A stretch of DNA of 64,000 bases from Adineta vaga (taxonomy: Eukaryota > Animalia > Rotifera): positions 5,270,001 through 5,334,000 of the forward strand of contig CP075495.1 in the NCBI GenBank assembly GCA_021613535.1. The letters are read 5' to 3'. Shown here piece by piece: positions 2,162 through 20,357 of this stretch. A program made the translations under genes and the position numbers. Position 1 is the stretch's first letter, and each line of letters begins with the position of its first letter. Under the pieces are notes generated by a model that saw nothing but the letters and a program-made list of their open reading frames with translations, was not told the origin of the DNA and searched no databases.

Positions 2162-3799
2162 ATGCTGCAAAGTACACCAAGTATTGCTGAAGAAGATGAA
2201 AATCATGAACAGGAACAATATGATTATGATCGATTACATTTTTCGACTGATAAACGAACAGATACTAGTCTTTTAAAAAATCAGTATGAACAATTACCTC
2301 AAATAACATCAACAACTACGTACGAGATCATAGAATTCTTTGTCAATCAAGTAGTCGTTTGTTTATTGATTCTTTAGAACTGGTTTAAGTTCATGGCGTA
2401 TCCCACGTCTTATATTAAATTTTCTCTCTGTTTCACCTCATATGCTTGCACATGCTGAAGAACGATTGTATCAAAGTATTATTCAACTGAATGATTCATT
2501 TACTTTTCATAGATGAATAATATGTTTAGATTTGAAAAATAAATATTACGGTGATTATGTACATATTCGGTAAGTTAAATTCACAAACGAGAAGTTTCAT
2601 GAAAAATGTATCATATATATATATATATATATTAGTGGTGATAATCTAATATGGACAGTACGAAGTTTAAATTCGTTACCAGATGCAACTCCAATTGTTC
2701 TTATTCATGATTTTGGTTGTGCTTCTGGTATTTGGATACAAAACATTGATTTTTTAAGTGCACGTCATCCATTATATATGTTTGATATACTTGGATTTGG
2801 TCGTTCATCACGACCATGTTTTGATCAAACTAATACAATAAATGCTGAAACAAAATTTGTAGAATCAATTGAAGATTGGCGTATAGCAGTTGATCTTCAA
2901 ACAAAATTCTATCTAGTTGGTCATGGATTTGGTGCATATTTAGCTACGCTCTATACAATGAGATATGGGCAATTTATTAAAAAATTAATCCTTCTTGATC
3001 CATGGGGTTTTAATCCAAAGCCGGATGAAAGTCAACTAAATTTGAGAACACCATTGTGGATTAAATTAATTGCTTATATTACTCAAACATGGACGTCATT
3101 TTCGGCATTTCGTTATCTTGGACCATTAGGTAAATAGAATCGGACAGGATTAATTAATATATATAAAATATAAAATAATTATTGACGATTGATCTTTTCT
3201 CTGCAGGTTTACCATTATTACAATTACTTGCACCACGTTGGAAACGTTTAGCACCGATTGATTCTTCATATGAAAAATCTAATGCACTCTATGAATATCT
3301 ATATCATGTAAATGTTCAACCGGCAAGGTAAATTTTTACATCAATATTTTTCTATAAATTTTAAATATTTTCTTTCGTTTGTAAATCAAGTGGTGATGTA
3401 GGTTTTCAAGCATTAGCATCTTGGTATGGTTGGGCTAAAGATCCAATAGTACAAGTAGATCATTCACGCATTGAAAATATTTCCGATGAAACTTTCATCG
3501 CATTTATATATGGTTCACGTACTAATATTGATAATACAGCAGCACAACAAATTCTTCATCAACGTGGTCCAGATAATACATGTATTAAAGTATGAAAAAA
3601 TCATAAAATTTGAATGATGAAATCAAGACTTTTCTTGTCGATTTCTTAGATCATTCACAATGCTGCGCATTTCTTTTTTATGGAAAAACCACTACAATTT
3701 CATGAAGTTATGAGTGAAATCTTATCTGATCTACCACATTATTTTCGTACATTGGCATCAGTTGATAGAACCATAACTACAACAGTATTACCTGAATAA
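2162..3799 (+). CDS. ABHD4/ABHD5-like alpha/beta hydrolase, copy 1, catalytic motifs degenerate
   Basis: Multi-exon gene (exons include 2162-2319, 2378-about 2476, about 2530-2569 and 2636-about 3129; stop TAA 3797-3799). Motifs PIVLIHDFGCASGIW, FDILGFGRSSRP, LVGHGFGAYLA, LILLDPWGF, YEYLYHVN, GWAKDP and NAAHFFFME. Start codon uncertain. Confidence 0.85.
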
Positions 3800-3998
3800 A
3801 AGAGAGTGAGAGAGACAGAGAGAAACAATTTGATTGATTCAATGAATATATTTTGTAGTCAGATGTATAAATTATCCGGTGTGTTAACGTTGTGTGATTT
3901 TTCCTTCATCTTCATGTATTTTGTTAAAAACAGTGATAGTTTTTCTTTATTGATATTGGATTTAAAAACTACTTGAATGTTATTTCAGATATTGAACA

Positions 3999-5777
3999 AT
4001 GACGACAACAAATGAGTTTTTGCAAAATTCTGATAATGATTTAACATCAGCATCGGATGCAATCGATCAAATGATTTCAATGTCAATTGCTGATCATAAT
4101 CCTGATCCGAATAGGCAAAATTCAGATGGAACAATATCAGAACAAACTAATGATACTAGATCAAATTGCTCTCCAAGGTTAGTACGTCACATGGAATAGA
4201 GAGAATATAGTCTTGATTTAACTTATCATTGAGTTCTGTATTATTCCATATTCATTATAGAATTTCTTCTCTATGTATATAACTAATTATTTGTAGGTAT
4301 GTGTTCGATAAAGAAATAAGCTTTGATCTCTCACAGTCTTATGCATGTATGTAATGTAGAATGATAAAAATAATTTTCAAATTGATGCTGCATGAATACA
4401 AATTTTGTTATTCATATCTTATCAGATCAGAAGAATTCTTTCTGTTGACTTCGTACACGAATGACTACGACTGATATACTCTTGTATGAGTATAGTTGGA
4501 CATAAGGCGAGTTTCATTGCATTTAAAATCTACTTTATAATTTAAAAATTCTAATTTCTTTTTACTAATTTCAACTAAATTTATCTTTGTTTCAGCCGTT
4601 TTCGTTCAATTGAATATATAAAACGACTTTCATGGACTAATACTGGTCCTGAACAATTAGCACGTGCTGAAATGAAAATCTTCGAAACATTAAAAAGTCA
4701 ATATCAAGGTCGTTCAATTCCTGTATGCAATAATACACAAAAAATTTGGACTGTTTATTCAAATTTAACATCAACAAATTATCCTATTGTTCTTGTACAT
4801 GGTTTTGGCGGTGGCGTCGGTCTATGGAGTTTGAATCTTGATCAATTATGTGTCGATCGTCCTGTCTACGCTCTCGACTTACCCGGTTTTGCACATAGTA
4901 CTCGACCAGTGTTCAGTCCTGATCCATTAGAAGCTGAAAAACAATTTGTAGATATGCTAGAAGAATGGAGAATTGGAATTGAATTAAATGAATCATTCAT
5001 ACTACTTGGTCATAGTTTTGGTGGCTTTATAAGTTCTGCATATACAATACGATATCCAAAATATGTTAAACAATTAGTTTTGGTTGATCCATGGGGTTTT
5101 GGACATAAACCTACTGATTGGCAAACATCACGAATGCAACGTATACCTCCATGGCTAAGATCATTTTCATCAGTGATGATGAAATTTTCTCCATTAGCTG
5201 GTCTACGAGCAGCAGGACCATTTGGTAAGAAATTAATTTTATTTATATCGATTGTTATGATTTCATTTCATTAGGTCTTCGAATCATGAAATATTTTCGA
5301 GCTGATCTACGGAATAAATTCGAAAAACTCTTCGATGATGATCGAATACTAGTATATTTATATCATTGTAATGCTCAAATTCCAACTGGTGAAGAAGGTT
5401 TTCGAACAATAAGTGATTTTCTTGCTTGGGCAAAACGTTCGTTTTTCTGAAATTATCTGTTTAGTTTATCACATTATTAAAATATTTGTATTTCTAGAAC
5501 CTATGATGGATCGAATAGATTCAATTGACGAACAGATTCCAATATATTTTCTTCATGGTGATCAATCATGGATCGATATTGAATCATCTGTATGTGTACA
5601 ATCAAAACGTCCAAATGTTTTTATCGATACGATTCCACAAGCAGGTCATCATGTAAGTCACTAGAATCAAATAAGTCGGAAATACAATTTTTTATTCTAT
5701 TTTCATTTCCGTAGGTTTATGCAGATGCACCGGTAGAGTTTGATATGTATTTAAAACGTGTTTTAATTAATAAATAA
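3999..5777 (+). CDS. ABHD4/ABHD5-like alpha/beta hydrolase (lyso-NAPE lipase-like), copy 2, catalytic motifs intact
   Basis: Five exons (about 3999-4177, 4596-5224, 5275-5437, 5498-5652, 5715-5777). Contains the HGFGGG oxyanion motif, GHSFG nucleophile elbow, LVDPWGF, YLYHCNAQ.PTGE and AGHHVYAD (HX4D). Confidence 0.9.
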
Positions 5778-6637
5778 TGAATGATTTTTTTATTAATCTA
5801 ATCGAGCTATTCAGAAGTATCCTACAAAAATAATGAATAGTATCAGTGCTTTTATTTTGAAACTGTGATCGTTTTATTTCGTAATAAAGTTAATAAAAAT
5901 ATATTATAACATATCAATGAAATGTTGAGAAATGCAAAGTTTCTCAAGAAGGTAAAAGCGGAAATTAGATCATTGAATGTTTCTTTGTTCCGATTAAATT
6001 GATGGTAAAATAACTTAATTTCCTTTTCTTATATGTATGTCATTAATGGACGCATTTACATATTATTCCCTGTTGGACTTTGGAAAGAAAATGTATAATC
6101 GGGAAATCCATAGGAGATCGGTTTGCTGTCTGAAGTTATAACCTTGATAAATACACATTTCCATTGTTAGTTGGTGCATTATATTTTAGACTCATCAATC
6201 TTCTTGTTTTTATCTGACGTTAAATCTGTTTCATCTGAACATGAATTAGTCGCTAATGATTTTGATTTGAATGTGAATTATAATGTTAGTTCTAGAATGC
6301 AATATTTATTTCAAGTTGTTATTCAGATTGTAAAGTATTATCATGAGAGTTAGAAGAATTGATGAGTTCAATTATTTACGCATTAGCATACTTTCTAGTG
6401 TTCGAAATCATGACATTCATCCCTTATGTGACGGAATTAACAAGTAAACAGAGTTTCCCTCTTATATTTAATATTAAAAACATGAGTTTTGTTCATATCA
6501 TATCAGTAATTAGGATATATCTTTACTTTCCAACTTGTCAATAAATTATTTTCAATTGGATAATTTCTTTTATTATAATTAACATCCATTTAAATGAAAA
6601 AGACTATGTAGTCTAATTTGTTATCAAGAGTCAAAGC

Positions 6638-8116
6638 TTAGCAACGACGGGTAGTATTTTGAAAAAGAAGAAATAAGAAAGTAAGGTAAAAAAATGTATT
6701 GCATGAAATTAATATGAAAGATTTCGACTGAATATTAGCATCAATTGTAATGGGAGGATGTAACGAAAATCGAATTGCATTGAATACTGCTTTCTGATTC
6801 AATGCTTTCAAATAAACAGTTTGTTGTCCAGAATTTAGAAGAAAATCTCCGACAGATATCCAACGTGAAACACTTGTCTGTTGATTATATACATATCCAG
6901 AATCTCCATCAGTTTCATTGTAAACATCTGTGACAGCAACATTCATTCGAAATAGCATAGTTGGAGTTGAATCAAAAGAGGATGGATTCCATATAGATAC
7001 TGTATAAACACCTCGTTTCATTAGAATCGGATGAATAATACATGAAGTATTGAAAGTAATTAATGATTGTCCAATAGTATCTTTTGGAAGTGATGATGTA
7101 TATTTCACAACATCATTTTTACATGTATAAATATCTTCATTATCAGTAGTAAAAATTTCTGTTGTAGAAGAATTCAATGAAAATTTCTCAAGAATCATTT
7201 CAGTAAATCGACCAAGAATATAAAAGTCACTTGGTGGTCTTTGAAAACCATTACTGAATGCTGAAAGAATAATTTCTTTTCCATTTGGTAATATAATATA
7301 AGCAATTTCCTCAACTGTGTCATAAGCATTTCCAACTTTTGAATAAAGTATACTACCAGCTGGTAAACCATTACCGAATGTTGTATGTTCACTTTCTAAT
7401 GTATGATATAGCATGGATTTCATATATTCGAATTCATTTTTTGGACGTGTTTGCATCAGATAAAGCATAAATGATGCTGTACAACATGATTGTAACATAT
7501 TACGTGAAGATGGACTTCTAAGAAGAAGTGATTCACTACCAATAGGTGATTGACCTGAGTTTGTTGGATATGTTTTACTTCGAACGACTTGATTTTCATA
7601 CAAATTTAAATCTATTAATAAACGTTCAATTGATAAACGTTGATATAACCAATTTGACCAACGTGTATCATTAATTGAAATTAAATCAGCAAGATTTGTT
7701 GTGTTTGTTATAGCATCAACAACATAACCTGTATCTAAATTCGATGAAACAATTATCATTGGTCGAACATATCGATCTAAACAATCAATTGAATATCCTT
7801 GAGTTTTACACCATTCTATAGCTGAATACATATACATCAATTTAACTGTTGATGCTGGATAAGCTATAAGAGTTCCATTCACACTACCTCGTTTCCATGT
7901 TTGAGATTTTTCTTCTCGAATAAGTATAGTAGCAGACAATCGAGTGAAACTACTCGATGGTTGACGAGCAAGAAATTCATCACGAACTTGTTCAATTCCG
8001 ATAGCTAGTTGTTCATCATTAACAATTTCAATTGATGGAATTTTATTACAACCACATTCTTCACAATTTATTCTTACAACGCATAAGAAACAAATAACTA
8101 TCATATAGTAAATCAT
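6638..8116 (-). CDS. Secreted or surface-anchored class A beta-lactamase-fold serine hydrolase with C-terminal golvesin/xanthan-lyase CBD-like domain; horizontal-transfer candidate
   Basis: Single exon. Likely start MIYYMIVICFLCVV (signal peptide) at 8116, although the ORF extends to 8203. SxxK (YPASTVKL), SxN (MIIVSSN) and KxG (YSKVG) occur in order. C-terminal module GVYTVSIW...YNQQ...WISVGDF..NSG...VFNAIRF, then a hydrophobic tail. Confidence 0.85.
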   Translation of the reverse strand: MIYYMIVICFLCVVRINCEECGCNKIPSIEIVNDEQLAIGIEQVRDEFLARQPSSSFTRLSATILIREEKSQTWKRGSVNGTLIAYPASTVKLMYMYSAIEWCKTQGYSIDCLDRYVRPMIIVSSNLDTGYVVDAITNTTNLADLISINDTRWSNWLYQRLSIERLLIDLNLYENQVVRSKTYPTNSGQSPIGSESLLLRSPSSRNMLQSCCTASFMLYLMQTRPKNEFEYMKSMLYHTLESEHTTFGNGLPAGSILYSKVGNAYDTVEEIAYIILPNGKEIILSAFSNGFQRPPSDFYILGRFTEMILEKFSLNSSTTEIFTTDNEDIYTCKNDVVKYTSSLPKDTIGQSLITFNTSCIIHPILMKRGVYTVSIWNPSSFDSTPTMLFRMNVAVTDVYNETDGDSGYVYNQQTSVSRWISVGDFLLNSGQQTVYLKALNQKAVFNAIRFSLHPPITIDANIQSKSFILISCNTFFYLTFLFLLFQNTTRRC

Positions 8117-8896
8117 TTTTATGTCTACGAGAGCTAAACTGATAAGCTTCAACAACAAAATGTTGGTTGATAAAGACGAACAATAAAACTTGATATCATT
8201 CATATTGACTATTTATCTTCCAGGTATCTTAAACCTTGAAAATATTTATTAAAATAACTTTGACACAAAAATTAACTATTGCCCCGATATACTCGTTAAA
8301 GATATGATTGTTTATTAAAAAACCAAGAATAACAATAGTATACATCGTAGCATACGCCTACATATATGTTTATCCTATGAAAAGAAAGGAAGAAAAGGAA
8401 ATGTAGGCGATAGAAAGAAGAAAAAATGTTCAATAACTTTGTTGATCTACTTCTTCTTATAGAAAATATGATGTAAATATTCATAAGGAGAGAGAGAGAG
8501 AGAAACTGAGAAAGAAAATGACGTTTCCTGGCTAGTTAATATAAATATCAAGTCGAAGTATAAAGTATTTTCTTCGTTGACATTAATCTTCTTGCGTAAA
8601 GAAATCCTTTGTTTTACTTTATTAAATTCCTCCATTAATCAAGTAAGTGAATATTTAACAGAAGATTAGCTCAATACGTCATAAATTATATACTTACTAT
8701 ATAAACAATTCTGTTCGTAAAAAAAAAGACACATACACACAGTAGATTCGACATAGTTTCGAAGCATACTTTTATGAGTCTTCATACTATTTTGAGTATA
8801 CAGAGGATTAGGATAAAATCGTTTATGTTTGTTTTATTAACTAAGATTTCTTTTTCTTTTCGTAGTTGTTTGATTATTTTGTTTTAGTTTTCAATC

Positions 8897-9286
8897 ATGA
8901 CACAATTATATTTTATATCCTTTCTTACATTTGTTTGCCTTCTTATTTTACAACCGTCCACGATTGAATGTCGTCCTCGTACTCAACGAATTGTTATTCA
9001 TGGTCATGAATGGACAGTACCTAACGAACCAGGATGGGAAGATGGTAGGTTTTTTTTTAGAATTTAGTTTTTGTTTCCATCATTATATTTTCTAGTTCTC
9101 AATGAAGCGGAATCTGTTCGTCATCGATTATTAAGTAATTGTGCTACTAGTCGAGAATGTCGATTGGCTGCTGAAAAAATACGACATATCTTCTTGAATC
9201 ATCCTGTTTCAGCGCGATATTATGATGAATATATAGACAATGATTCTCCTCGTCGTGAACAAGCATCGATTTTTAAATGGGGATAA
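8897..9286 (+). CDS. Small secreted protein, putative neuropeptide precursor (112 aa)
   Basis: Exons 8897-9044 and 9096-9286 join in frame across a 51-nt GT-AG intron. Signal peptide MTQLYFISFLTFVCLLILQPSTIEC; ends ...SPRR-EQASIFKWG-stop. Confidence 0.75.
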
Positions 9287-11302
9287 ACATATAATATTGA
9301 AAATCATCATCAAGAATGAATGAAAAGGAAAATCTACAAGCTTTTATGTTAATTATTTATTATGACAATAAATAATATAACCAATACAGAATTAAGATGT
9401 CTGGTACTTTACACTTTGATTTAGATAATGTTTTTCTATAAAAAAAAATAATAATAAAGATTATATCACTCTACTCAAGTTTCTTATGTTTCTATATTTA
9501 AGAAATTGGAAAATGTGGAAATTTTGTTTTCGAACTTCAAAACTTAATCAGCATTATACTACACAAAATAAGATCGAATTGGTCTAGATAAGGTGTATTT
9601 TGCAAAATGGAAAGAAATTTCGAAAATCGCTTCGGAAACGAGGAATCACAATGTCAATATATATATATATATAATAGAAAATGTTTATATTGTTTCGTTT
9701 GTTTATTAGTGCATTTAATTAAAGCTTTTTAAAATCAGAGAGGATGTCCCCTTAACCTCCTCCCAGCCGTGCTGCCCCTGGTCCCCTGTATAGATTTTTC
9801 GATGCATTTTCGTTAAAATCAATGACATCAATATCTTATTTTCTTGTCTCATATCATGACAGAGAAAAAGATGCTCTACGTTTCAGTACAATTTGATCAT
9901 TGTTGAACTAGTATTTCAATCATATTAAGTCACCGTACTCTTAAACTTTAGTTTTTGACTGCTTCATGGGTTGTATTGACAAAATATAATTTGTCAAAGC
10001 GTTGAGAAGCTCATGAAATATATGAATGAAATTCACTAAATTTCTATTTGTACATCCTGCCAAACAAGTCTCAATAAAACAAAATCACGAAAGAAAAAAA
10101 TCTTATTTGTCAGAAAATGAGAATGTTAGACTACGACGGCTATCACACTCGTAGTTTTTTGACTGAATGTGATTACTTTTAATTGAATATGTTGATTTTG
10201 TTACTCTCTTTTCAAAATAACAATCTTAAATATACTCATCTAGATATCAAAATTGAATGACGAACTTGAGCTTTAATATTAAGGAAGTGGATGAGACACC
10301 TAGAGTGCGTCTTTTCTTTATTTGAAAGAGTACCTGCTGTTCTAAAATATTATGGGACAAGAATTCGAGAGAAAGAAAAGATCAATACTTCGTTGAATTA
10401 AAAGACCGTGATATTTGTAATACAATATTATATTAGAGTATGAATATGCTAGGAAAATATGTTCTAGGGACTTGAATAATTGTTTTGACACGATGGTTCT
10501 TTTAATTCACAAGATTACTATGTATTTTTTGTTGTAATTTTATTCTAAAATAAGTTTAACTAAAAGTATTACTCATTGATATATAACATAGAAAACATTA
10601 CAAGTTTTGTCATGGAAATTATGACTCATGTTTTCATTTCTAAACTCATTGTGGGGATGCATTGCATACATATGTGTTCTTTTTCATATACCTCTCTGAA
10701 GACAGACGATAGTCAATAATTCACTTCGGTAGAAAATAAATCGATATGAATAAAAGAAAAAAAATATATTTGCGCATATATCAAAAGAAGTTTACTCTCT
10801 AGTTCTTTACATTTATAATTTGCTATTCGTTCTTTTTACTATTCATTTTCCTCTGTAAATTGTTAAATAATCACATGAAAAGTCTAATCAGTTTCATAAA
10901 AAACGAGTCCTGATCTTGTTTTCGTTCGTCACAACATTACTTAAAAGTTTTTCTTTATATAAAAATTTTATTGATCGGACATTTTCACTTGCGCATCCAT
11001 GTCTAATAACTCTCTTGACCATTATTTTATTAAGTATTTTCGTCTCGTTTGATTATTTTCAACAGCAAAAACGTACACTTGCAAATATATTTCACTGAAT
11101 CTTCTATTTACAAAATGAGTATGTTGATATTAACTAAAATGCATTGTTTTAGAAATCCGTAGTATTCGGAATCTTCTCCTACATAAAAGTATAGTCAATT
11201 TCGTACTGAGATCGTTTTTTCATAATATTATTTAATCGGAATAACATAGAACAGATTTTTTCCGAACCTCTGATTACCGTATTGCTCTATTTAATCACAG
11301 AT

Positions 11303-13427
11303 ATGTCGATGTCAGCAACAACATTCCAACCAATGATGACTACACAATCTTCTACGTTACCGATCTATATTATAACAGGTTTTACCGTACTAAGTAATTC
11401 ATAAATAATCTAGTTTCGTATGTTTCATCTATTTGTTTTTAATTGCAGCTACTACATTTCCAACATCTCAAATTACCAGTCAAACGACTCCTGTAGTCTC
11501 TAGTCGAATGACAACAAGTAGTCTAATCGGAACTAGTACATCAACATCACTACCGAATAATCTACTACCATTGAATCCTGATACTTGTAATATTTCAAAT
11601 TATGTTAGGTTATTCAATGGTACTTGCGTGTCGAAGTCAGATGCACAAGTATGAATTACGTAATTTAAAGTAGTTTTTTTTAAATATCTTTATTTCTTCT
11701 TGTAGATAATTAGTTATGATATAATACGTAATCGTTCTACGGATACTAATAAGACGGCTTACGCACTTTCCTTATACATTAGTTCAATTACTAATTTAAC
11801 TAATGTACGAAATAGTACATATGTTTTAACAGTGGATGAAATCGATAATGCATTGTCTAATCTTTCAGTTATTAATTTAGCGATCAATTCCAATACATCT
11901 TTTGTTATGGCACAACAACTAAATCAAAGTAATAATGTTCTTGTTCTAGGTGCATCATTCAAACGTGCTATTGGTGGAGATATTGTTGATACTTCAAATA
12001 GAGAAAATATAATAAAATCAAATGTAACTGCAGCAGCTATTGTTAATAGAGAATACATAACTGGTATCTCATCTATAAATATGATTATTATTGATAAACC
12101 TACGGGATATGAAAATATCGATAATAAAACAAATAAAACACTTGCTTCATCAGTAATTATTGTTAATTTACGACGAAATAGTTCAACTTTTATTCCATTA
12201 TCTGTTTCATTATATTTTAATCCATTAGCAGAATATAAACAAAATGGAAGTGGAAAATATCTTTGTTCATTTTTTAATACAAATACATCAACATGGAGTG
12301 AAATGGGTTGTACAAATGCAAATTTTTCAAAAGAATTTAATCGTTATGAATGTAGTTGTAATCATACAACTTCATTTGCTCTTCTCTGGCTCCCACAATC
12401 ATTATTAACAACAACTTATACAAAACAATTAGATGCACAAGATATTACTTCGCTAATCTTTCAATTAATTTCAATCATATGTTTTATCATTATTCTAATA
12501 CATGCTATTACCATACGAATTATCAATCCAATGATTGGTATTGAAGCACTTCATTTACTTCCATTAATTTCAACTGCAAGTTCAACACTTTTATTTATTT
12601 TTTATATTGCACTTGCTCTGACTGCCTATACACAAACATCGTCTTCAGATCAGAGGATCTGTTTTTCAAGTTCGATCGTATTGATGTTTATTACTTATTT
12701 TCTTTTAATTTTCATGTTCTGTGTTAAAACAATTACGGGTTATTTTTATTTCATTCGTTTTATTCGTCTGTTTCCTCAACCATCGCATGGAAAACTTTTT
12801 ATTATGCTTATCATTGGTTTTATTATTGCTAGTCTATGTATTGCATTGGCAATTGGTTTTAATTCTCGTTCAACTCAACAAATTACACAATTATATCCAT
12901 ATAAACTATGTTGGTTTACTTATCCAGTAATTCATTATTTTATGACAATACCAATTGGAATTTTTCTCTTTACAAATTTTATAACAATAATTTTTGTTGC
13001 AAATAGTATCTTTAATCATGCACGTAATGCTACAACATCGAAACAAATCAATGAACGATTAAAACGATGTGTTATTGTTCTGTTATCATCTTGTGTTTCA
13101 CAAGGTTTTGGTTGGATATTTGGTCCATTGATATCATTTGTTAATCCAACAGCTGGACAAGTTGTTACATGGATATTTATTATAATAAATGGTTTGGAAG
13201 GTGTTTGGTCTGTACTTTTATATGTATTCATTCGATCACAACGATTATATGAACAAAAACATACTGAAGCTGCAATAGAACTGGCCAAAGCAAGTACAAG
13301 TTCATCAAATAAAATAAAACGATTAAATAAACAAAACAGTGATCAATTTCCATTATCTTCATTGAGTAATGTACGTAAAAGAGAATCAATTAATAATTCG
13401 AGTGGTGATGATGTTGATGATATGTGA
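11303..13427 (+). CDS. Adhesion GPCR (Ser/Thr stalk, GAIN/GPS domain, 7TM), copy 1
   Basis: Exons about 11301-11393, 11449-11648 and 11706-13427. GPS motif CSFFN...WSEMGC...ECSCNHTTSFALLW, then seven hydrophobic helices (LCWF, QGFGWIFG, INGLEG). No signal-peptide exon could be identified, so the 5' end is uncertain. Confidence 0.85.
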
Positions 13428-15537: not shown

Positions 15538-16586
15538 AATCATATATATGTGAGTGTTTATTCAAAAGTGGAATTTATTTTTCTATTAAGTCAAATCATA
15601 ATAAATGCTTATGTAAACTTCTTATACTCTAATGTTGTCATTTGGTTAAAGTTAACATCATGTTTTTATTGCTGTAGCTATATATTTATGACTGCGTTGA
15701 AGTGTAATTTGTATTTCGTGAAATTCAGTTATATTTACAGTGGATACTTATTCTCATATTAGATAATTATTGATCCTTTGCAAAAATGATTTTGCTTTTG
15801 AAATGCATTGTGCATGAAATCGATCTCATTGTAACTGACAATACTTGTATATTCTATACATGAAAGAGATGAAAGAATAATGGCAGCGGACTTTTTCATT
15901 TGACAGTCACTGTTTTTCTTGTGACTTTGAGAAAGTTGTTAATCGGAAGTAGGAACATCGAAAAAACAAACGGTTACTACCGTTTTTCTCGTTGTGCGAT
16001 GTGATAGATGATGAATTGTAAAAACAATAACATCTTAAAGTCTGTCAATACGATTTTTTCATTCGGTTGGTCTGGTAAATCAAACATATTTGCATTATGA
16101 AAATTTCAAAAAGATACTATTTGTTTTGCTTCTCTTGCACTTTCTTTCCTTTCAGTGTACGCGAAAATCAACAAAATGAAGGTTACGAATAGAAAATCAT
16201 ATTTCTTTTACTTCCATTTCAAAGAATAAATTTGTCGATAGGTAAAGTAGAATATGTTTGATATTTGTTGCATATATTACATATTCATTCTTTATGTTGA
16301 CTGAGGAAAATGATTGGCATTTGGCCAAGGACGCTTCCGTCTTTCAGTATGTAGTTAAATGAATGAAAACGAAGAAAAATATTACAATATGGTTAAGCAA
16401 AATTTGAGTAACCTCGAACTAAATATACAATTGATTCAATAATATTTATTCTTCAACAGAACTTGATGGTACAGGATTTCCTTTCATAAATATATCCGAG
16501 AAAAATAAAAGGAATTAGTTGTGCTAGATTTCTGTAAATATTTTTCCTATGTCGATAATTCAATTTTAGATAATAATATATTAGAG

Positions 16587-19500
16587 ATGAACAACATCAA
16601 ATTAAGATTCTACTTTATATTATTAGTAATCGTCATTGTGGGCCAATCACAATTAACTACAGGTAATAAATTTTATCTTCTGTTCATTTAAAGTCTTCGA
16701 TCGAAACCATAAAAAAAGCTGTAATAACTATATATCCGTTTCGGTGAAAAACTTGATTTTTTATAACATATAAGATTACTTTCGTACTTTTGTTCCTGCA
16801 AATATTAAGTTTCACACATTGTCATGACTACAGAATTAAACTAAATTGAGATATATCATATACACTATTACTTAGTTTATCGAATCTTCAGACTGCATTA
16901 GAAATAAAATTCCATTATTTCTCTGGAGAAATAAGATCATTTATTACTTTATAAAGCCAAATATTTCAACATAGTAGAAAAATCAAACAAAACAGTACCT
17001 CTTTTACCTAAACCTACTAGTCTGCGACACTTCATGATATGAGAATGTCACTTCAACAAGCATAGAATCCAGAAATATTAGCTGCCAAGATATTCGTTAC
17101 CTCCTACAAAAAGACAGTTTTCTACTTTCAAAAATCAGAGCACCTATGGATGATACACATATGCAAGTCAGATAAATGACTGCATCCACATGTCTTTATT
17201 ACTCCTATGACCCATATCTGCTAGCTTTAGTTTCATCCATCGACATAATAGAAAATCGGATGTAATTGATATCAAAACGCACATTATGCAACTTTAATAC
17301 ATTATATTCATTTCTTTTCCGATCCAACCACTTCTAATTATCTATTGCAGACAGTGAAACATCCACTAATGCCGATCTGTTAACTTCCTACACCACCAGT
17401 ACCACAACTACTAGCTCAACTAGTGCTACAACGACCACCTCAACTAGTAGTACGAGCACATCAAGTACTAGTTCAACGAGCACAACTACCGACACTACCT
17501 CAACTAGTAGTACGAGCACATCAAGCGCCACAACTAGTACTACGAGCATATCAAGTACTAGTTCAACAAGCACAACTACCACAACTACCTCAACTAGTAG
17601 TACGAGCACATCAAGCGCCACAACTAGTACTACGAGCATATCAAGTACTAGTTCAACAAGCACAACTACCACAACTACCTCAACTAGTAGTACGAGCACA
17701 TCAAGCGCCACAACTAGTACTACGAGCATATCAAGTACTAGTTCAACAAGCACAACTACCACAACTACCTCAACTAGTGCTACAACGACCACCTCAACTA
17801 GTAGTACGAGCACCTCAAGCACCTCAACTACCTCAACTAGTGCTACAACGACCACCTCAACTAGTAGTACGAGCACCTCAAGCACCTCAACTACCTCAAC
17901 TAGTGCTACAACGACCACCTCAACTAGTAGTACGAGCACATCAAGTACTAGCTCAACGAGCACCACTACCGACACTACCTCAACTAGTAGTACGAGCACA
18001 TCAAGCGCCACAACTAGTACTACGAGCACATCAAGTACTAGTTCAACCACCACAACTACCGACACTACCTCAACTAGTAGTACGAGCACCACTACCGACA
18101 TTACCTCAACTAGTAGTACGAGCACATCAAGCGCCACAACTAGTACTACGAGCATATCAAGTACTAGTTCAACAAGCACAACTACCACAACTACCTCAAC
18201 TAGTACTACGAGCACCTCAAGCGCCACAACTAGTACAAGCACTTCAAGCACCGCAACTAGTACAAGCACTTCAAGCACCGCAACTACCTCAACTAGTAGT
18301 GCGAGCACCCCAACTATTACAGGCAACTCAACCACCGGAACTATTGCTATAATTGCAACGTCAGTAGGAAGTAACTCATCTATGGTCACAACGGGATTTA
18401 TTATATCGTCGAGTGGTCCAATCACGACTGAAGTAACAACTATGTTGACAAGTGTGACGTCAAGTTCAATGACGACAACGACGACGAATAGTTTTTACTG
18501 TATGAACTCAACTCATGTCTTGTTAACAAATAGCAGTTGTGTTCTGAAAACGAGCGGACAGGTATTGTAGGACATCAGTTTTTATTTAAGTTTAGCATAT
18601 GTCTTTTGCTTTAGGAATCAAGCTATAGTGTATTAATTAATGAAACGGCCAATTCAACGGTTGTGGGAAATAGTCTGATCAATTACTTTGAGTCAGTAGC
18701 TAATGTCACATCTCCTAATTCTAATTTTTTAATAACACTCGGTCGAGTTGATGGATTAGTTGATAATTTGAACAGTACGAATTTTAATGTTAATGGAACA
18801 TCGAACTTTTTGATGGTACAAAATCGAAATGAAAATGATGATGTTAAAGTATTGGGTGCTTCGTTTCAACCGAGTATTCATGGTCAAATCGTTAATTCTG
18901 AAAATAAGGATAACATTCTTCGATCAAATCTATCGTGTGCTGTGGTTGTTAGTAATGATTCAATAGCTAATATTCAATCGATGAGTATACTTATTATTAA
19001 TGAACCAAGTTTATATAAAAATATTGATAATTCAACAAATGATACCGTACTTCTATCGCCAATAATTGTGGCTTCTATGAAAAGACTTACTGGCACAACA
19101 AGTTCAATAAATATTTCGTTATATTTTACACCATTGGCGGATTCTCCAGCATCAAATAATGGCACATTTCGTTGTTCATTTTACGATACAAATACATACC
19201 GTTGGAATGATTCTGGCTGTACTTCACCAACGTATAATGAAGATTATAAGCGACACGAATGCTCTTGTAGTCATACAACGTCGTTTGCTCTTATTTGGTT
19301 GCCATCATCATTATTAAAATCTAGTGGGCGAACATTTCGAGCAGCAGATATCGCTTCACTTGCAAGTCAATCATTGTCCATTGCATGTTTTTTAGGAATT
19401 CTCGCTCATGCTTTCGTTGATCGATTTATCAGACGCTCAATACTTCTATATGCAACTGTTTTACTTCCATTAATATCATATGGAAGCACGTGTATCCTTT

Positions 19501-20357
19501 TTATCTTTTATATTGCTCTTGCTCTAACAGTACACACTCGTACGACGTCAGAAAATGAAAGTCAATGTTTTTTAAGTTCAAGTATTCTTATGTTTTTCAC
19601 TTATTTCTTCTTAATCTTCATGTTATGCATTAAAACAAGTGTTGGTTATTTTAATTATCTTCGATTTGTTCAACTTTTCCCACCACCATCATCCCGACGA
19701 CTTATTATTTTACTACTGATATCATTTTTGCTCTCTATAGCATGGGTTTCTTTTGCAATTGGTTTCAATTCAAATTCTTCTTATAATATTATTCAATTAT
19801 ATCCATATAGATTTTGTTGGTTTACTCGTTCGGTAATTTACTATTTTTTAACAATACCTGTCTCGATCTTCCTTCTTTTGACTTTTATTATTATTGTTTA
19901 TGTCGGAAAACGTATGATAAATCATGTACAACGAGCAACAGCGCCACATCAAGCATATCAACGAATGAAACAATGTGTTTTCGTTTTATTAGCATCTTGT
20001 ATTACGCAAGGAATTGGTTGGTTATTTGGTCCATTCCTTTCATTCGTTAGTCCAACTGGTGCATCTGTTTTGGAATGGTTTTTTATTGTATTTAATGGAT
20101 TAGAAGGTGTATGGTCAATTGTGGCATACATAATTATTCGATTACAATTAAAAGATGAGCAGAAGCGTGTAACAGCAGCAAGGAAATTAGCCAAACAATC
20201 GGATATTAAAAGAAGCAGCACTAAAAGAGAGCCTTCAGTCAATAGACAAAAAGAAAGTAGATCTATATCAAAAGATATTGAAACTCGACCTCGCAGTAGA
20301 CGGAACGACTCAAGCCGTCCGTCAGATGATAGACATCGACAAGAATATATGTCTTAG
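16587..20357 (+). CDS. Adhesion GPCR with long mucin-like Ser/Thr stalk, GAIN/GPS and 7TM, copy 2
   Basis: Exon 1 16587-16662 (signal peptide MNNIKLRFYFILLVIVIVGQSQLTT), exon 2 17351-18561 (S/T-rich frame, mostly not shown in the ORF track), exon 3 18615-20357. GPS motif CSFYD...WNDSGC...ECSCSHTTSFALIW. Clearly paralogous to copy 1. Confidence 0.9.
17388..18330 (+). repeat. Coding minisatellite encoding the mucin-like stalk
   Basis: Three identical 90-bp units (17501-17590, 17591-17680, 17681-17770), two 63-bp units (17771-17833, 17834-17896) and degenerate flanking copies built from CAACTAGT.. submotifs. Confidence 0.95.

Follow-up and report, generated by a model that had tools for sequence, protein, structure and literature searches.

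A predicted serine hydrolase of beta-lactamase fold and probable protist origin in the bdelloid rotifer Adineta vaga

We analysed a 64,000-nucleotide stretch of the genome of the bdelloid rotifer Adineta vaga (GenBank assembly GCA_021613535.1, contig CP075495.1, positions 5,270,001 to 5,334,000 of the forward strand), hereafter called the window and numbered from its first letter. Within it, an intronless gene at 6638-8116 on the minus strand encodes a predicted serine hydrolase with the fold shared by class A beta-lactamases and penicillin-binding protein A (PBP-A), in which the S-x-x-K, S-x-N, Glu and K-x-G elements are intact. A foreign origin of this gene is highly probable, and a protist was probably its immediate donor. 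The explanation that we favour on balance, with appreciable reservation, is that of a functional rotifer gene which arrived via a protist and encodes a tethered, glycan-acting enzyme.

The features of the gene are the following:

6638..8116, minus strand: complete coding sequence, 492 codons plus the stop codon (6638-6640), in a single exon; from the open reading frame (ORF), the public gene model, the orthologues and unjointed RNA contigs
8063..8116, minus strand: predicted signal peptide, residues 1-18; hydrophobic N-terminus with presumed cleavage before E-E-C-G-C-N
7172..8035, minus strand: predicted catalytic domain of class-A beta-lactamase/PBP-A fold, residues ~28-315; from PF13354, AlphaFold2, VIA-align and Foldseek
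7841..7852, minus strand: S-x-x-K element, S89-T-V-K92, with S89 the presumed nucleophile; read base by base
7739..7747, minus strand: S-x-N element, S124-S-N126; read base by base, aligning to S-D-N of PBP-A
7532..7534, minus strand: E195, glutamate of an omega-loop-like segment and candidate general base; invariant in 64/64 family members, with a putative equivalence to E166
7331..7339, minus strand: K-x-G element, K260-V-G262, on beta-strand 256-264; read base by base, aligning to K-T-G of PBP-A
6761..7162, minus strand: predicted C-terminal beta-sandwich module, residues ~319-452 (Golvesin_C; CBM6/35/36-like); from PF25275, the family profile and the all-beta model
6641..6754, minus strand: bdelloid-specific C-terminal extension, residues 455-492; a small-residue linker (S-K-S), then hydrophobic residues 467-485 (6662-6718)
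6555..6637, minus strand: 3' untranslated region, with AATAAA at 6569-6574 and an RNA contig end at 6555

The open frame is uninterrupted over 6638-8203 of the minus strand, and the ATG at 8116 gives a product of 492 aa. The public gene model is a 100% self match to this product and is colinear with orthologues of 483-496 aa, whose N-termini agree with a start at 8116. An in-frame ATG at 8203 was rejected as the start, both for its mismatch to the orthologues and because RNA depth is zero at 8140-8326, which places it outside the transcript. In all orthologues about 18-20 hydrophobic residues precede a conserved E/Q-E-C-G-C-N, and the structure model of the A. vaga protein has a helix at residues 2-18.

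Catalytic domain, C-terminal module and tail

The original prediction, made from the DNA letters, had read here a Beta-lactamase2-type enzyme with STVK, SSN and KVG motifs, a signal peptide, an extra beta-rich module and a hydrophobic C-terminus, and each of these is indeed present. Against PF13354 (Beta-lactamase2) the protein scored 28.7 bits, the gathering cut-off being 22, over residues 72-287 and profile positions 8-213 of 214. It missed the NCBIfam class A equivalog NF033103 (14.4 bits, cut-off 200). The AlphaFold2 (AF2) model, built from a 64-sequence alignment, had a mean predicted local distance difference test score (pLDDT) of 91.9 and consisted of an N-terminal helix, an alpha/beta plus all-alpha domain (28-315), an all-beta domain (319-452), a low-confidence linker and a helix (472-491). 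When this model was submitted to Foldseek, Thermosynechococcus PBP-A (2j9o/2j7v) came first, followed by class A beta-lactamases. Alignment with VIA-align to LRA-5, ancestral enzymes, CTX-M and PBP-A gave Z scores of 23.4-24.4 with a root-mean-square deviation of 2.3-3.0 A (~2.5) over 220-240 residues (~229). At the sequence level a profile search was required: the single-sequence search of solved structures returned a chance SH3 match only, and the family profile reached PBP-A (E 1.9e-7) in an alignment that included its S-D-N and K-T-G. Searches of the ESM Atlas by features and by shape retrieved generic bacterial Beta-lactamase2 clusters only. The automatic JGI name of many family members, 'protein phosphatase methylesterase 1', has no Pfam or fold backing and was rejected.

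The presumed catalytic residues are almost constant across the 64 members of the family. S89 is found in 63 and K92 in 62, while S124, N126, E195, K260 and G262 are invariant. The AF2 model places S89-T-V-K92 at the beginning of helix 88-105. It puts E195 in the omega-loop region, on a short helix (193-198) flanked by the alpha6-like and the alpha8-like helix, and this position makes E195 a candidate for the role of Glu166. The middle residue of S-x-N is D in 39 members and S in 25, the bdelloids having S and most other members D. That of K-x-G is far more variable (V in 20, I in 14, N in 7, P in 6, S in 5, L in 5, T in 3 and W in 2). In class A numbering S-x-x-K and S-x-N are about 60 residues apart; here the spacing is 35 residues, about 25 shorter than in class A. 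The family also has an invariant motif, K-T-Y-P-T-N-S-G, that is absent from penicillin-binding proteins (PBPs).

The C-terminal module is predicted to be a carbohydrate-binding-like beta-sandwich. With the single sequence, PF25275 (Golvesin_C) scored 29.3 bits over residues 363-443, just below its gathering cut-off of 31.6, and this family is on record for most of the relatives. The family profile matched residues 890-1040 of the Paenibacillus xanthan lyase 6f2p (E 1.3e-20) and, weakly, CBM35-type modules. Modules of the CBM6-CBM35-CBM36_like_2 type are shared by golvesin, xanthan lyase and two Bacteroides lectins (PMC9166713).

Beyond this module, protist and bacterial relatives have no tail and end at or just after ..Y-P-N-A. 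In most bdelloid orthologues the chain goes on with ..P-P-L-T-I-D-(x)n-S-K-S-S, after which come 15-20 hydrophobic residues, as a rule up to the last one. In the A. vaga protein the best 19-residue hydropathy window of the C-terminus starts at residue 467. The tail is poorly conserved beyond S-K-S-S and its hydrophobic character, as expected for a cleaved glycosylphosphatidylinositol (GPI)-attachment signal. It is likely to be such a signal, or else a single-pass anchor. The second option owes its place to a detail of the A. vaga copy that tells against GPI attachment, the seven polar residues (Q-N-T-T-R-R-C) following the hydrophobic stretch. Tethering of the enzyme to a membrane seems to us somewhat the better guess. 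A metagenomic bdelloid contig (L092, 4492-7377) with the same synteny carries two tandem tail-less copies of 459 and 458 aa, which end right after P-P-L-S-I/V-Q, the stop codon being followed at once by AATAAA; these appear to be a soluble, duplicated variant. Since some lineages have such copies, tethering would be common but not universal among bdelloids.

The original prediction also spoke of an enzyme retargeted to the animal cell surface. This wording proved too strong, as protist relatives already have signal peptides, only the tail is specific to bdelloids and some copies lack it. Bdelloid and protist sequences have in common a C-x-C shortly downstream of the cleavage site and two adjacent cysteines (C-C) at 211-212. 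Together with the signal peptides of the protist proteins this suggests that secretion was inherited, and the C-terminal tail appears to be the only element new in bdelloids.

Genomic setting, expression and origin of the gene

Two sequencing runs from two studies (X1 and X5) were judged to be RNA because in their contigs GT..AG introns of 50-62 nt have been removed from neighbouring genes. Supported joints are 5223>5274, 5436>5498 and 5652>5715 in the second of two neighbouring ABHD-type genes, and 9043>9095 in a small gene on the other side. Over the gene itself both runs gave coverage without any joint (X1, 6619-7959 and 7930-8056; X5, 6555-7593), and the X5 contig end at 6555 lies 14 nt beyond AATAAA. 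At the 5' end heterozygous sites between 7960 and 8056 interrupt the RNA contigs. RNA depth fell to zero in the intergenic bins 5896-6456 and 8140-8326, where a DNA run (X13) is continuous apart from gaps between contigs. The gene is thus transcribed and unspliced, with short untranslated regions. The earlier reading of a single exon among spliced genes holds over 6555-8056; however, intronlessness is not very distinctive here, since two neighbouring adhesion G-protein-coupled receptor (GPCR) genes also hold long single ORFs, of 531 and 564 aa. In both X1 and X5 a low-depth contig covering 7018-7079 matches the window up to 7079 and then continues with 84-151 letters unlike it. There is no canonical splice acceptor at the 7079 break, and the contig reflects either a rare alternative transcript or a chimeric unitig of minor abundance.

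The 100.8-Mb assembly of six contigs contains a single copy of the gene (one match), which lies on a chromosome-scale contig among ordinary animal genes: a Sec1/Vps33 gene, the two tandem ABHD-type hydrolase genes and the two adhesion GPCR genes, both of which have the GPCR proteolysis site (GPS) motif C-S-C-N-H-T-T-S-F-A. The order GPS-GPCR, small gene, beta-lactamase-like gene, two ABHD genes and Sec1 is conserved in A. ricciae (two assemblies), Rotaria sp. (two assemblies) and one metagenomic bdelloid contig. Run X13 spans the junctions of the gene with its neighbours at 5896-6643 and 8027-8742; its contigs are separated by gaps of 24, 25, 66 and 68 bases, and the 66-base gap (7960-8026) falls inside the gene. 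GC content is 0.31, matching the neighbours, and GC at third codon positions (GC3) is 0.13, compared with 0.10-0.20 in the neighbours, so that the gene is compositionally ameliorated. Contaminating microbial DNA or a chimeric assembly join is thereby reduced to a practically negligible explanation: the same neighbours recur in other bdelloid assemblies and in the metagenomic contig, DNA coverage crosses the junctions apart from four small gaps, GC and GC3 equal those of the host, and the contig is of chromosome scale. The linkage to metazoan genes and the transcription for which the original prediction had proposed checks are therefore both in evidence. The ratio of nonsynonymous to synonymous substitution rates (dN/dS, Nei-Gojobori) was 0.13, 0.16 and 0.30 against A. 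ricciae and Rotaria, rough values because dS is near saturation. The catalytic residues are retained in every bdelloid orthologue, and the gene is under purifying selection.

Orthologues were found in Adineta ricciae and A. steineri (79% identity), several Rotaria (75-76%) and Didymodactylos carnosus (53%). They are already in public proteomes, automatically named as beta-lactamase-domain proteins, and our literature search found nothing linking bdelloids to this gene. Its presence in Didymodactylos, Adineta and Rotaria indicates entry before the living bdelloids diverged. Among matches from 5.8 billion proteins, in a word-based search of limited reach in which about one quarter of the entries are named, there was no named animal other than bdelloids. 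The next matches, at 37-43%, were the metagenomic proteins P0041, P0044 and P0045 and a protein of Willaertia magna. Bacterial relatives are rare and more distant (31-39%), with 115 confirmed stretches among 185,579 species genomes. Their carriers are Sumerlaeota, Phycisphaerae and other Planctomycetota, Armatimonadota, one Gloeobacterales cyanobacterium and Steroidobacteraceae. An exhaustive profile search of 1.84 billion representatives returned 666 proteins at E <= 1e-30, mostly multi-copy Golvesin_C proteins; among the best 150 representatives, near-full-length two-domain relatives formed about 50-60 clusters at 50% identity. A giant virus or phage as vector was rejected, as a search of 2.9 million viral contigs yielded no relative.

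The contigs of P0041, P0044, P0045, P0063 and P0057 are eukaryotic by gene content, their neighbouring genes having been searched as single uninterrupted ORFs with exons left unjoined (for example G-alpha on contig L001, where a 63-nt gap between two called pieces is probably an intron). Neighbours are UGGT, G-alpha, a PAK kinase, CCDC113 and Rpc34 on L001, Kelch/ANF-receptor proteins on L002 (the contig of P0044), RecQ and an S10 carboxypeptidase on L003, TRAPPC8 and ATG17 on L084, and Sec3 on L086. The best named matches of the L001 kinase were Willaertia, Acrasis and Naegleria (44-46%), and its animal matches were MST/STK-type kinases only, covering 70-83% of the query; this gives a faint indication that L001 belongs to a protist with heterolobosean affinity.

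In a tree of 39 rows (IQ-TREE, LG+C20+F+G4), 19 eukaryote-type rows were split from 20 bacterial rows with support of 100/99. The eight bdelloid rows grouped together (100/99), then with P0041 and P0044 (100/99), next with P0045 and Willaertia (96/94), and then with P0063 (100/100). Forcing the non-rotifer eukaryote-type rows into one clade cost 138.8 log-likelihood units (approximately unbiased (AU) test, p 1.7e-41). The bdelloids share S-S-N with P0041 and P0044 only. The horizontal transfer proposed in the original prediction is thus supported, both by the lack of any other animal homologue among the matches and by the nesting of the bdelloid genes among non-animal sequences. The kinship with bacteria, cyanobacteria in particular, which it had also put forward stood as a distant one, with the Gloeobacterales homologue at about 35% identity and PBP-A as the best solved fold, but the nearest relatives lie in a clade with checked protists. 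As to the older step between protists and bacteria, its direction is unrooted in this tree, and we infer that the bacterial homologues are on the outgroup side.

Several points temper the case for a protist donor. The donor's identity rests on one neighbouring kinase of L001 at 44-46% identity, and the search with the Kelch/ephrin-receptor-like neighbour on L002 gave no named match. Of the 19 eukaryote-type rows, eight are bdelloid, five are eukaryotic by checked context and one is Willaertia, leaving five unchecked for context; and the grouping submitted to the AU test was picked after the tree was seen. A route by which the bdelloid ancestor acquired the gene directly from bacteria (cyanobacteria, for example), the protists having obtained theirs separately from similar bacteria, would accord with the same two-domain architecture in the bacterial homologues at 31-39% and with the bacterial source of most bdelloid foreign genes (PMC4632278). 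We nevertheless consider it improbable: bdelloids are nested several nodes deep, at 96-100% support, among sequences on eukaryotic contigs, all sampled bacteria fall across the 100/99 branch, the AU test rejects a separate clade of the non-rotifer rows, and the C-x-C, the C-C pair at 211-212 and S-S-N (the last with P0041 and P0044 only) are shared with protist sequences. Vertical inheritance of an ancient eukaryotic 'golvesin-like' gene, which all sampled animal lineages except bdelloids would have lost, appears less probable still. The family does form one eukaryote-type clade, and the module takes its name from a Dictyostelium Golgi protein, which implies eukaryotic members beyond one supergroup (PMC9166713). 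However, the matches include no named animal besides bdelloids, the bdelloid genes adjoin heterolobosean-like sequences instead of occupying the expected opisthokont position, and very many independent losses would be needed. Bdelloids, moreover, hold thousands of foreign genes, most of them ancient and bacterial, of which about 29% are protist-like in Rotaria transcriptomes (PMC4632278).

Proposed history, mechanism and substrate

With a protist as the probable donor, the history of the gene may be pictured as follows. A protist lineage would first have obtained the gene from bacteria, and the ancestor of bdelloids would then have received it from a bacterivorous protist. Bdelloids would have added the C-terminal tail, of GPI or transmembrane type, tethering the enzyme to the outer face of the membrane, and some lineages would have kept or regained soluble, tandemly duplicated copies. 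In the proposed mechanism the C-terminal module would bind a microbial glycan and hold the catalytic domain on the polymer, S89 would attack an acyl (peptide or ester) bond on it, and E195 would activate water for deacylation, allowing the enzyme to turn over. An intact acyl-enzyme set under purifying selection suggests a working hydrolase and not a lectin-like pseudoenzyme. The constant presence of the carbohydrate-binding-type module, together with bacterial versions carrying FN3 or dockerin modules, which are typical of secreted polymer-degrading enzymes, points to an extracellular glycan-bearing polymer as substrate.

The carriers of the family are bacterivorous protists, bacterivorous rotifers and bacteria of polymer-degrading phyla. 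This ecology, and the fact that the closest solved relative is a muropeptide DD-peptidase, guided our ranking of substrates. The stem peptide of peptidoglycan from ingested bacteria, cleaved in a DD-peptidase-like manner, would be the likeliest single substrate, but in itself this assignment is a possibility that we hold with considerable doubt, and a number of observations count against it or against the mechanism. The hydroxyl residue of K-T/S-G, which in the class A beta-lactamase/PBP-A family sits on strand beta3 and binds the carboxylate of the substrate, is absent here (V261). Unlike in beta-lactamases and DD-peptidases, the middle position is S or T in only 8 of the 64 members, which weakens both the peptidoglycan and the beta-lactam readings, the two that the original prediction had put forward; such variability argues, from the sequences, against a canonical beta-lactamase and against carboxylate recognition of the canonical kind. 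The HMMER alignment to PBP-A skips the loop that holds E195. Bacterial neighbourhoods (68 flanking ORFs from about 35 loci) offered no recurrent partner and no functional hint, EamA transporters and FGGY kinases recurring in one bacterial subgroup only. In Steroidobacteraceae (for example P0098, L026 and L028) the catalytic domain follows a membrane domain of the fatty-acid-hydroxylase/sterol-desaturase type (PF04116), and Golvesin_C may be present or absent; this fusion hints at a membrane-lipid-linked substrate.

These same observations bear on the other candidate activities. A glycan-targeted esterase or amidase acting on a bond other than D-Ala-D-Ala, such as that of an acyl or lipid group carried by a microbial polysaccharide or glycolipid, would agree with the variable middle residue of K-x-G, with invariant motifs of the family that PBPs lack, such as K-T-Y-P-T-N-S-G, with a partner module common to xanthan lyase, with the bacterial fusions to FN3, dockerin and the fatty-acid-hydroxylase membrane domain, and with the polymer-degrading habit of the bacterial phyla concerned. 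We rate it only slightly below the peptidoglycan reading, and hence as rather unlikely, given that the sequence profile finds a DD-peptidase as the nearest homologue of solved structure (PMC11189452) and that no family member has been characterised. A true beta-lactamase, protecting the animal or its food processing from beta-lactams of soil and moss fungi and bacteria, would be in keeping with the class-A fold (Z ~24) and with S-x-x-K, S-x-N, K-x-G and an invariant glutamate in an omega-like loop that could deacylate. It nonetheless strikes us as an improbable assignment, since the class A equivalog scored 14.4 bits against 200, identity to solved class A enzymes is 10-18%, the carboxylate-binding residue (T/S235) is unconserved and the carbohydrate-binding-type module would have no obvious role with a small-molecule substrate. 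A wider proposal, speculative and unlikely in its entirety, is that Beta-lactamase2 plus Golvesin_C constitutes a distinct enzyme family of phagotrophic eukaryotes and polymer-degrading bacteria which acts on an acyl group of a microbial glycan or glycolipid and not on beta-lactams or D-Ala-D-Ala, and that bdelloids took the gene from protist prey or a protist neighbour and turned its product into a GPI-anchored ectoenzyme in the gut or on the body surface.

The novelty of these findings is modest, as foreign genes are already known and abundant in bdelloids; the points of interest are the protist route and the added tail. The gene adds to the bdelloid foreign-gene catalogue a case well documented by linkage, synteny, expression, selection and a supported tree. 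It suggests that a 'bacterial-looking' animal gene can arrive via a protist, which bears on the assignment of donors in alien-index screens. The small uncharacterised family to which it belongs joins a penicillin-recognising fold to a carbohydrate-binding-type module in bacterivorous eukaryotes and could define a new activity for this fold. For rotifers the product is a candidate enzyme of digestion or surface defence, an example to be expected in bdelloids that leaves the general picture unchanged.

Neighbouring features and comparison with known systems

Other features of the window were noted around the gene. The two tandem ABHD4/5-like alpha/beta-hydrolase genes occupy 2778-5796 on the plus strand, and the pair is kept in Adineta ricciae and Rotaria, where the annotation fuses it into one model of 756 aa. 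The small expressed gene (8888-9380, plus strand), with one 51-nt intron (9043>9095), separates the beta-lactamase-like gene from the GPCR; at the same spot other bdelloids have a gene of 112-132 aa without any Pfam match. A CT/GA microsatellite at 8488-8520 shows length polymorphism, with a 12-base GA insertion in X13 and several contigs breaking there. The adhesion-GPCR-like genes at 11832-13427 and 18663-20357 (plus strand) are paralogous, each having a GPS motif and a seven-helix region in one long ORF. The region 16000-18500 is richer in GC (0.35), with strong negative GC skew, and contains long repetitive ORFs on both strands, V/L/E-rich on the minus and P/Q/L/V-rich on the plus strand, features suggestive of a minisatellite or of a gene for a low-complexity repeat protein.

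Among known systems, PBP-A (Tll2115 of Thermosynechococcus elongatus; 2j7v/2j8y/2j9o) is both the best Foldseek match and the best profile match of the catalytic domain. It is a DD-peptidase specific for amidated muropeptides and close to class A beta-lactamases (PMC11189452). Identity with the rotifer protein is only 13-15%, and PBP-A is a bacterial protein without a carbohydrate-binding-type module. PBP-A has Leu in place of the class A Glu166, whereas the family of the rotifer gene has an invariant Glu in that loop region, and its K-T-G contrasts with the variable middle residue of this family.

Class A beta-lactamases (CTX-M, TEM-like enzymes, ancestors and the LRA-5 precursor) have the same fold (Z 23-24, ~2.5 A, ~225-235 residues), share PF13354, and place Ser, Lys, S-x-N and K-x-G at the same structural positions. 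The rotifer protein differs from them in failing the equivalog, in its shorter motif spacing, in the unconserved middle residue of K-x-G and in its extra C-terminal module and tail. With Dictyostelium golvesin and the xanthan lyase 6f2p the likeness is that of the C-terminal beta-sandwich (Golvesin_C); two Bacteroides proteins with this type of domain are glycan-binding lectins (PMC9166713), and our literature search found nothing linking golvesin to a lactamase.

The closest parallel in the history of the gene is with other genes acquired by bdelloids, enzymes that degrade cell walls among them, with which it shares a non-metazoan origin, ancient presence in both Adineta and Rotaria, expression and host-like composition. 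The catabolism of bacterial peptidoglycan has been listed among the categories of foreign genes in bdelloids (PMC4632278). The gene described here differs from these in that its immediate relatives are protist and not bacterial, and in its putative membrane-anchoring tail, which would have been added after the transfer.

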